Assembly (NCBI RefSeq): GCF_001194135.2
Contig: NC_068981.1
Location: 94,421,343 to 94,485,342, forward strand
DNA from: Octopus bimaculoides
Lineage: Eukaryota
Reading direction: 5' to 3'
DNA length: 64,000 bases
Shown here one piece after another: positions 316 to 63,127 of the stretch (within the stretch, counting starts at the first letter, position 1; the number at the start of each line of letters is the position of its first letter). The translations under genes and the position numbers were made by a program. The notes below the pieces were generated by a model that saw only the letters and a program-made list of their open reading frames with translations, did not search any database and had not been told where the DNA came from.

Positions 316-548
316 CTTGATACCATTAACTCTTGTTCAAGTTCTTTTAGCTTTTTTTGTAATATTTCAAATGTATTTCCATAAGCTTTGGAATCCAACC
401 AGTTGTTGTTTGAACTTATGAAGAATTGTGGGGGATTTTTTGTTAAAGAATCCATTAAATTTTGGAACTGGAACATTTCTTTAACAATTTCAAAGTAACT
501 GACAGTTCTATGAATATTTTCTGGATCAGTTGTCAGGAGAACATACAT
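316..548 (-). CDS. Exon B9 (phase 0-2, 233 nt)
   Basis: ttttcctttgtag|ATG...TCA AG|gtaaga; [19 protein letters not shown]...ELEQELMVS. Confidence 0.88.

Positions 549-63127: not shown

Follow-up and report, generated by a model that had tools for sequence, protein, structure and literature searches.

A nine-unit array of four-exon cassettes in an Octopus bimaculoides gene, probably derived from the extracellular lid of ABCA transporters

The stretch of DNA considered here (the window) is a 64-kb portion of the Octopus bimaculoides genome (NCBI RefSeq assembly GCF_001194135.2, contig NC_068981.1, positions 94,421,343 to 94,485,342 of the forward strand), numbered below from its first base. It is AT-rich (33.7% GC), with many microsatellites and interspersed repeats, and contains seven N gaps. 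On its minus strand, the window holds approximately 5.8 kb of the coding sequence of a much longer, expressed octopod gene that continues beyond the window. This gene contains tandem copies of a cassette of four exons, the classes A to D, and had been the subject of an original prediction made from the DNA letters without database searches.

Exons and transcription of the gene

Within the window, the gene model consists of 33 exons totalling 5,795 nt and 1,931 codons, free of stop codons and flanked throughout by AG/GT (Table 1). The original prediction, which named no strand, was of a giant gene built from tandem four-exon cassettes, and RNA contigs together with contig arithmetic bear this out almost to the base. 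The 33 exons do splice into one stop-free frame, on the evidence of RNA-contig junctions and exact contig arithmetic, and with GT-AG at every exon; the phases proposed for the four classes (A 0-0, B 0-2, C 2-1, D 1-0) are the same in all nine units; and the proposed class sizes (A 183-228, B 197-233, C 134-158 and D 113-140 nt) match the RNA-checked model, in which the lengths of the complete units (217, 227, 221, 231, 232, 238 and 247 amino acids) are identical to those first given. The outermost coordinates, 316 and 63127, coincide with real exon boundaries, and the A-B-C-D order, for which RNA mapping of the junctions had been suggested as a check, is upheld by spliced contigs.

The RNA evidence consists of contigs from public RNA-seq runs of the same organism, drawn from several studies; approximately 40% of the words sampled from a test stretch are contained in these runs, as exons would predict. 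One contig, laid on 18200-38190, shows twelve exons joined by 11 consecutive junctions from 18910 to 36962. Direct junctions, written here as the two bases joined, are also available for D8/A9 (3543/4326) and for A3/D2/C2 (44411/46140 and 46279/47820), and all direct junctions read CT..AC on the plus strand, which is GT..AG on the strand of the gene. Further junctions were obtained from the loose ends of contigs (13673/14957, 548/3334, 4462/7956, 43835/44229, 47956/49603 and 61319/62945).

A 7,674-nt contig (run X15) is collinear with the window from 3457 to past 63127. Its record coordinates for B7 (1121-1341), A3 (from 4111) and A1 (from 5443) equal the summed exon lengths exactly; therefore, the exons that were not seen directly add up to the correct length, which leaves no room for an additional exon. 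Partial sums agree as well, with D8, C8, B8, A8, D7 and C7 totalling 1,033 nt, equal to the record span 88-1120, and with exact sums for B2, A2, D1, C1 and B1 (872) and for A4, D3, C3 and B3 (708). A second contig, of 1,657 nt, begins at 3334 and extends downstream. Exons A8, B8, D7, D3, C3, A2, D1 and C1, together with the inner ends of others, lack a direct RNA view and were predicted by a dynamic programme on splice sites, codons and phase, so that some ends represent prediction plus contig arithmetic.

Several candidate features were discarded. Two exon-chaining dynamic programmes, one unconstrained and one constrained by exon class, recovered most of the exons but also produced a false poly-isoleucine "D" exon at 6897-7036, a false "D0" exon at 63424-63524 and an A1 that was too long, at 270 nt; all of these were corrected by RNA, and a non-canonical junction at 4468/7962 is not real and reflects over-extension by the aligner. 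Raw reads from runs X24 and X37 provide almost no coverage of the gene's exons. In these runs, approximately 160-175 reads per run skip 1,341 nt at 18583/19925 (TG..TG), ending at an A23 tract, a pattern that probably stems from faulty mapping at a repeat or poly-A and not from splicing.

The nine-copy array that had been proposed stands in that nine A-B-C-D cassettes are present, but they are not all either intact or cut by the window edge, as unit 7 most likely has its A exon lost to an assembly gap. In an RNA contig (run X27), 320 nt lie between B7 and C6; D6 accounts for 134 of these, and the remaining 186 are absent from the window. A 30-nt loose end of the RNA contig (AGCATCCAGTAAATCTTCAAATCCATTAAG) likewise has no match anywhere in the window. 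Given this excess and the unmatched loose end, the gap at 16988-17851 most likely hides a 34th exon, A7, an A-class exon of 62 codons, the last ten encoding LNGFEDLLDA, which is found in RNA and absent from the assembly. The homologue from Argonauta contains the unit that matches unit 7. Because A exons are in phase 0-0, the assembled frame stays open despite the missing exon, an example of how a scaffold gap can conceal an exon without disruption of the frame. The other six N gaps are intronic. The gap at 29653-30132 is crossed by a spliced junction (29151/31912), and those at 38651-38759, 41442-41539, 43291-43345, 53181-53320 and 58495-58504 lie in introns where contig arithmetic excludes hidden exons.

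Table 1. Exons of the gene in the window, in transcript order, with the evidence for their ends ("sum check", agreement with contig arithmetic; "record", coordinates in the X15 contig).
Unit	Exon	Position	Strand	Length (nt)	Remarks
1	A	62945..63127	-	183	0-0, Cys pair; X15 piece 62945-63130 = record 5443-5628; AG/GT; loose end matches 61290-61319; upstream exon D0 outside window
1	B	61108..61319	-	212	0-2; upper end by loose end, lower end predicted, sum check
1	C	59531..59673	-	143	2-1; predicted GT-AG and open frame, sum check
1	D	57409..57521	-	113	1-0; predicted, sum check
2	A	55057..55251	-	195	0-0, Cys pair; predicted, sum check
2	B	49603..49811	-	209	lower end by loose end 49607-49636 (4 ambiguous bases), sum check
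2	C	47820..47956	-	137	direct junction 46279/47820 and loose end
2	D	46140..46279	-	140	direct junctions both sides
3	A	44229..44411	-	183	direct junction 44411/46140; record 4111; loose end 43806-43835
3	B	43639..43835	-	197	upper end verified, lower predicted, sum check
3	C	42650..42801	-	152	predicted, sum check
3	D	39748..39878	-	131	predicted, sum check
4	A	36962..37189	-	228	three Cys; direct junction 35252/36962; upper end by arithmetic, AG at 37190-91
4	B	35056..35252	-	197	direct junctions
4	C	32263..32396	-	134	direct junctions, cut moved +2 to GT-AG
4	D	31912..32045	-	134	direct junctions
5	A	28954..29151	-	198	direct junction 29151/31912 across N gap 29653-30132
5	B	27034..27251	-	218	direct junctions
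5	C	26048..26190	-	143	direct junctions
5	D	24475..24611	-	137	direct junctions
6	A	22777..22989	-	213	direct junctions
6	B	20456..20682	-	227	direct junctions
6	C	19782..19921	-	140	direct junctions
6	D	18777..18910	-	134	direct junction 18910/19782; lower end by GT donor
7	A	16988..17851	-	186 in RNA	most likely hidden in this assembly gap
7	B	14957..15177	-	221	RNA contig piece, both ends; record 1121-1341
7	C	13516..13673	-	158	upper end by loose end, sum check
7	D	12129..12262	-	134	predicted, sum check
8	A	11030..11242	-	213	predicted, sum check
8	B	9216..9448	-	233	predicted, sum check
8	C	7956..8113	-	158	lower end by loose end after removing 6-base aligner over-extension
8	D	4326..4462	-	137	direct junction 3543/4326; upper end resolved as for unit 8 C
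9	A	3334..3543	-	210	direct junction
9	B	316..548	-	233	upper end by loose end 519-548, lower predicted (GT donor)

The repeat unit and its homologues

Each cassette comprises four exons with homologous intron positions, and in all nine units it both starts and ends in phase 0. The cysteines (17 in 1,931 amino acids) are nearly confined to an aligned pair in the A exons, with a spacing of approximately 20-29 residues and, in most units, an N-x-T sequon after the second cysteine. N-glycosylation sequons number 33, where 20.4 +/- 4.3 are expected. The motifs originally assigned to the exon classes, namely the cysteine pair in A and L/F-x-D/E-Y ... N/D-P in D, recur in class-wise alignments.

In pairwise comparisons, units 2, 3, 5, 6, 7 (weakly), 8 and 9 detect one another, whereas units 1 and 4 do not. 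With exon-anchored leave-one-out profiles, every unit beats at least 999 of 1,000 shuffles, and all nine octopus units are matched almost end to end by a profile of 72 non-cephalopod units (E 1.5e-6 to 9e-19). Profile-level similarity between the units, on which the repeat proposal depended, is thus significant by both approaches. Growth by intragenic duplication of the whole four-exon block is supported by the homologous intron positions and phases in all nine units, but the duplications seen are not recent. Unit-to-unit protein identity is only ~20-34% over the best aligned stretch, and no DNA-level similarity was detected among the cassettes in the window; the copies are therefore old. The duplications within the window are ancient also in view of the one-to-one counterparts of units 4 to 9 in Argonauta and of the arrays of the same kind in bivalves, an annelid, crinoids and a hemichordate (see below).

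No Pfam match above threshold, spectrin and nebulin included, was found for the exons, the units or long spliced stretches. The original statement that the repeat has no named domain therefore holds as far as Pfam names are concerned, but the unit is not an orphan, as the family is homologous to a region of ABCA transporters and its arrays occur inside ABCA proteins (see below). For a segment of two Argonauta units, the orthologues of octopus units 8-9, taken in the A-B-C-D register, the AlphaFold2 (AF2) model is all-helical with a predicted local distance difference test score (pLDDT) of 67, its best part lying across the D/A boundary. The natural sequence variants of the family are numerous enough for a confident AF2 model, and a single C-D-A-B segment, modelled from a 53-row alignment, is again all helical, with a pLDDT of 86.4 and a predicted template modelling score (pTM) of 0.78. 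Since the C-D-A-B segment folds confidently and the A-B-C-D pair less well, the folding unit appears to be out of register with the exon cassette.

With eight aligned A exons as the query, a full HMMER search detected 20 proteins, giant and described as "hypothetical" or "uncharacterized", in Argonauta, Acanthosepion (a cuttlefish), three bivalves, the annelid Owenia, two crinoids and the hemichordate Ptychodera. A word-indexed protein search with roughly concatenated exons had returned zero matches, a word index being blind to this family. The homologues reach lengths of 3,359 to at least 6,292 amino acids, with A elements that recur every ~195-250 amino acids, unit arrays spaced at ~225 amino acids, and 5 to at least 26 units per protein.

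The closest of these proteins is that of Argonauta hians (GAB1599091.1, here P0001), in which the units are collinear and one-to-one with octopus units 4 to 9, at 40-49% identity; octopus units 1 to 3 lie upstream of the reach of this partial model. Judging from this comparison, the ectodomain evolves fast and yet retains the exon phases, the cysteine pair and, in most units, the sequon. Further downstream in P0001, at residues ~1400-2320 and past the stretch that is orthologous to the window, three units in a row share 96-98% identity, and a fourth is ~74% identical to them. Either the cassettes were amplified recently there or the assembly has collapsed or expanded; these near-identical units suggest that duplication may still be ongoing, and similar ones may be present in the octopus gene outside the window. 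In other phyla, domains of other kinds are inserted into the arrays. In Ptychodera flava (P0002), a C-type-lectin-like stretch was recognised by eye at approximately residues 560-690, and a WAP four-disulfide-core domain is present at residues 532-571 of the Anneissia japonica protein (P0019; Pfam E 3.8e-5).

Relationship to ABCA transporters

The family profile, in the C-D-A-B register, matches residues 108-291 of human ABCA4 in a search of 177,635 PDB sequences (E 5.4e-7), with both cysteines aligned. In hhalign comparisons, the family profile also matches ABCA1/7/2 (87%, E 4e-6, ABCA1 residues 125-244) and, in the same C-D-A-B register, the native lid of vertebrate ABCA13 (78%, E 1.7e-5), where the cysteine pair is conserved; an A-B-C-D-register profile matches the first extracellular domain (ECD1) of vertebrate ABCA13 more weakly (E 0.002 and 0.011). 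The cysteine pair at ABCA1 C197/C222 is invariant in ABCA1/7/2 and is aligned with the pair in the units. Comparison of octopus segments with the family profile in turn gives 99.5% (E 8e-23). These profile matches indicate that the unit family is homologous to the ECD1 lid region of ABCA transporters. A PDB match of the octopus-only profile to a designed coronavirus five-helix bundle was judged to be helical-composition noise.

In ABCA4, residues ~138-271 form the apical lid of ECD1, which is unresolved by cryo-electron microscopy (cryo-EM) and contains many disease variants of uncertain significance (bioRxiv 10.64898/2026.06.25.734683). Elsewhere the lid has only been homology-modelled (PMC8219669). 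In both ABCA1 and ABCA4, lid and tunnel enclose a hydrophobic space with lipid-like densities, and are thought to store or pass lipid (PMC8219669; bioRxiv 10.64898/2026.06.25.734683).

The position of the arrays in the homologues is consistent with this relationship, with an ABCA N-terminus before them and a complete ABCA core after them. In the proteins from Ptychodera, Owenia and Argopecten (P0002, P0005 and P0011), the array comes directly after an ABCA N-terminus (..LLLWKN.., the first transmembrane helix, C.Y...LPS.G). In Sinanodonta (P0008), at least eight units are followed, in one protein, by two ABC2_membrane_3 domains, two ABC_tran domains and R1_ABCA1; the best named vertebrate matches to this core are ABCA12-like (33%, 551 bits) and ABCA13 (32%, 515 bits), in a search that returned few ABCA proteins. 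The Antedon protein (P0015) contains nine A elements and is annotated at its source as ABCA1-like. In Potamilus streckersoni, a model with repeats only (KAK3588925.1, CHS0354_023686, P0013) and one with an ABCA core (CHS0354_023690, P0026) are four locus tags apart on a 1.56-Mb contig, and are probably one gene split by annotation.

The octopus gene is accordingly best explained, with good though incomplete confidence, as a tandemly amplified array of lid modules within ECD1 of a transporter of the ABCA12/13 clade. The gene itself is most likely of the ABCA12/13 type, its joining to an ABCA core in octopus being drawn from the homologues. By homology, the array would be preceded by the N-terminal membrane helix, and followed by the remainder of ECD1 and the core, of an ABCA12/ABCA13-clade lipid transporter, each module being a duplicated copy of the ECD1 lid, all-helical and ~220-250 residues in length. 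The array may have grown by unequal crossing-over within introns; as both ends of the block are in phase 0, the gain or loss of a whole cassette would leave the frame intact. The modules would be disulfide-stabilised, glycosylated helical domains facing the lumen or the outside in a long flexible chain, and, in the manner of the one lid and tunnel in ABCA1 and ABCA4, they probably offer hydrophobic pockets that hold lipid or sterol from the ATP-driven core or hand it on. They may also, or instead, direct protein sorting. Such a chain of lids would multiply the sites for lipid, or act as an elongated relay or scaffold. In mouse ABCA13, vesicular localisation and cholesterol internalisation both depend on the long N-terminal region (Nakato et al. 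2020, PMC7948424).

Several points weigh against this interpretation. The window and the readable RNA contain repeats only, with no ABCA membrane or ATPase parts seen, and the same holds for Argonauta P0001, the closest homologue, for which the model is partial. Octopus units alone have no significant match to ABCA1/2/7 or to PDB ABCA chains (E 0.59) and reach the lid only through the family profile, so that the link to the lid is transitive. A Foldseek search of the PDB gave no significant structural match for either AF2 model, a silence that is attributed to the lid being unresolved in the available structures and that does not constitute positive evidence. In the vertebrate ABCA13 sequences compared with the unit, which were shorter than full length, only the native lid matched clearly, with one weak extra match (P0120 residues 454-551, E 0.003). 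Finally, the lipid-holding role of the modules is one that we infer by analogy.

It is also conceivable, if rather doubtful, that the chain of lids is a new ABC-transporter architecture, a long, glycosylated string of small, disulfide-pinned domains with hydrophobic pockets, serving as a store or relay for sterol or lipid off the membrane or as a template for a lipid-rich structure in the lumen or outside the cell, and that the ~3,500-residue N-terminal region of human ABCA13 is a degenerate array of the same kind.

The principal alternative is that cephalopods have a separate gene for a stand-alone giant repeat protein, secreted or membrane-anchored, with no ABCA core, the array having either become separate or been so from the start. 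This would fit the repeats-only content of the window and of the 7.7-kb RNA contig, the similar content of the Argonauta (P0001) and cuttlefish (P0004) models, and the separate Potamilus models for repeats (..023686) and core (..023690). However, these repeat-only models are flagged as partial or are neighbouring fragments on one contig, whereas repeats and core are found in one protein in Sinanodonta, the nine A elements of the Antedon protein come with an ABCA1-like name, and in Ptychodera, Owenia and Argopecten the array comes directly after the ABCA N-terminal helix. This alternative is therefore considered unlikely.

An intracellular, cytoskeletal-type helical repeat protein resembling spectrin, nesprin or nebulin, in which the periodicity is merely domain-like, is far less plausible still. 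The all-helical prediction, the giant size and weak matches to coiled-coil or designed helical bundles could be read in this way, but there is no Pfam spectrin or nebulin match, the cysteine pair is conserved, the N-glycosylation sequon is both conserved and enriched, the profile match to the ABCA lid is significant, and in the ABCA proteins the array follows a single N-terminal transmembrane helix, at the position of ECD1. The seven N gaps, two of them with duplicated flanks, might raise the suspicion of an artefact, be it duplication in the assembly, a pseudogene or frames left open by chance in AT-rich DNA, but this is refuted by the RNA junctions, with spliced contigs from several studies connecting the exons, an open frame over 1,931 codons, units without shared DNA similarity, and orthologous Argonauta units conserved at 40-49% identity.

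Several further features of the window lie in introns. At the gap 41442-41539, the left flank (41154-41441) is repeated on the right (41541-41828) with 99.7% identity over 288 bp, and the flanks of the 10-N gap at 58495-58504 overlap by 55-98 bp; both look like scaffolding or gap-closure artefacts. Four intronic stretches (29539-30872, 15344-15397, 3875-4132 and 46938-47075) have an RNA contig depth of up to ~2.7e5, compared with ~75 for exons, and many variant contigs and loose ends; one of them adjoins the gap at 29653-30132. These are copies of highly expressed interspersed repeats that resemble short interspersed nuclear elements (SINEs) or other transposable elements. At least two interspersed-repeat families are present in the introns, in both orientations and with translated matches that are 60-90% identical. 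Copies include 3839-4248, which matches 52358-52812 (inverted) and 47073-47231, and 7340-7958, which matches 58719-59309 (inverted) and 30996-31758. A six-frame self-comparison of the window produced mostly transposon-like matches, together with weak same-strand protein similarities on the minus strand. An intronic sequence at 12725-12781 on the plus strand matches the Rfam tRNA family at 29.9 bits, against a threshold of 29, and is not called by ARAGORN; it is probably a tRNA-derived repeat fragment.

Comparison with known systems

The superfamily to which the gene most likely belongs (ABCA) is a known one; no description of internal repeats in ABCA13-type ectodomains was found in the literature. 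ABCA13 is the largest ABC protein and has been linked to psychiatric disorders, and the family described here provides a concrete hypothesis for the make-up of the giant ABCA12/13-type ectodomains. In ABCA1 and ABCA4, no part of ECD1 is less well resolved than the lid, and the family would present it as an autonomous, duplicable module of ~230 residues with a conserved disulfide and glycan. The locus also represents a clean, RNA-verified example of gene growth through the duplication of phase-symmetric exon cassettes.

Among known proteins, vertebrate ABCA13 and ABCA12 are similar in overall layout, as the repeat-bearing homologues have an ABCA N-terminus, a hydrophilic region of several thousand residues and then the core, and the core of the bivalve protein P0008 is best matched by ABCA12-like and ABCA13 names. 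In length, the octopus array is comparable to the long N-terminal region of ABCA13, with at least 1,931 amino acids in the window and an RNA contig of 7.7 kb that consists entirely of repeats, and the native lid of ABCA13 aligns with the unit profile with its cysteine pair kept. The two differ in that the octopus array consists of clear ~230-amino-acid modules, each encoded by four small exons. The long region of human and mouse ABCA13 has been reported to be without recognisable domains (PMC7948424), and the title of Prades 2002, cited in PMC7948424, refers to a single 4.8-kb exon that encodes part of it.

The ECD1 lid of ABCA1/4/7/2, part of a lid-tunnel-base architecture, resembles the unit through profile homology over ~115-185 residues and through the invariant cysteine pair, the unit being, like the lid, helical and probably also glycosylated and facing the lumen or the outside. 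The likeness is one of sequence profiles; in cryo-EM maps the lid is poorly modelled or not resolved at all. Canonical ABCA proteins have one copy of the lid, whereas tandem arrays of 5 to at least 26 copies occur in the family. Among repeat proteins more generally, the nebulin super-repeats and the reelin repeats are also encoded by tandem multi-exon blocks with fixed intron phases that, like the octopus cassette, start and end in the same phase, although in sequence and fold they are unrelated to the octopus unit.

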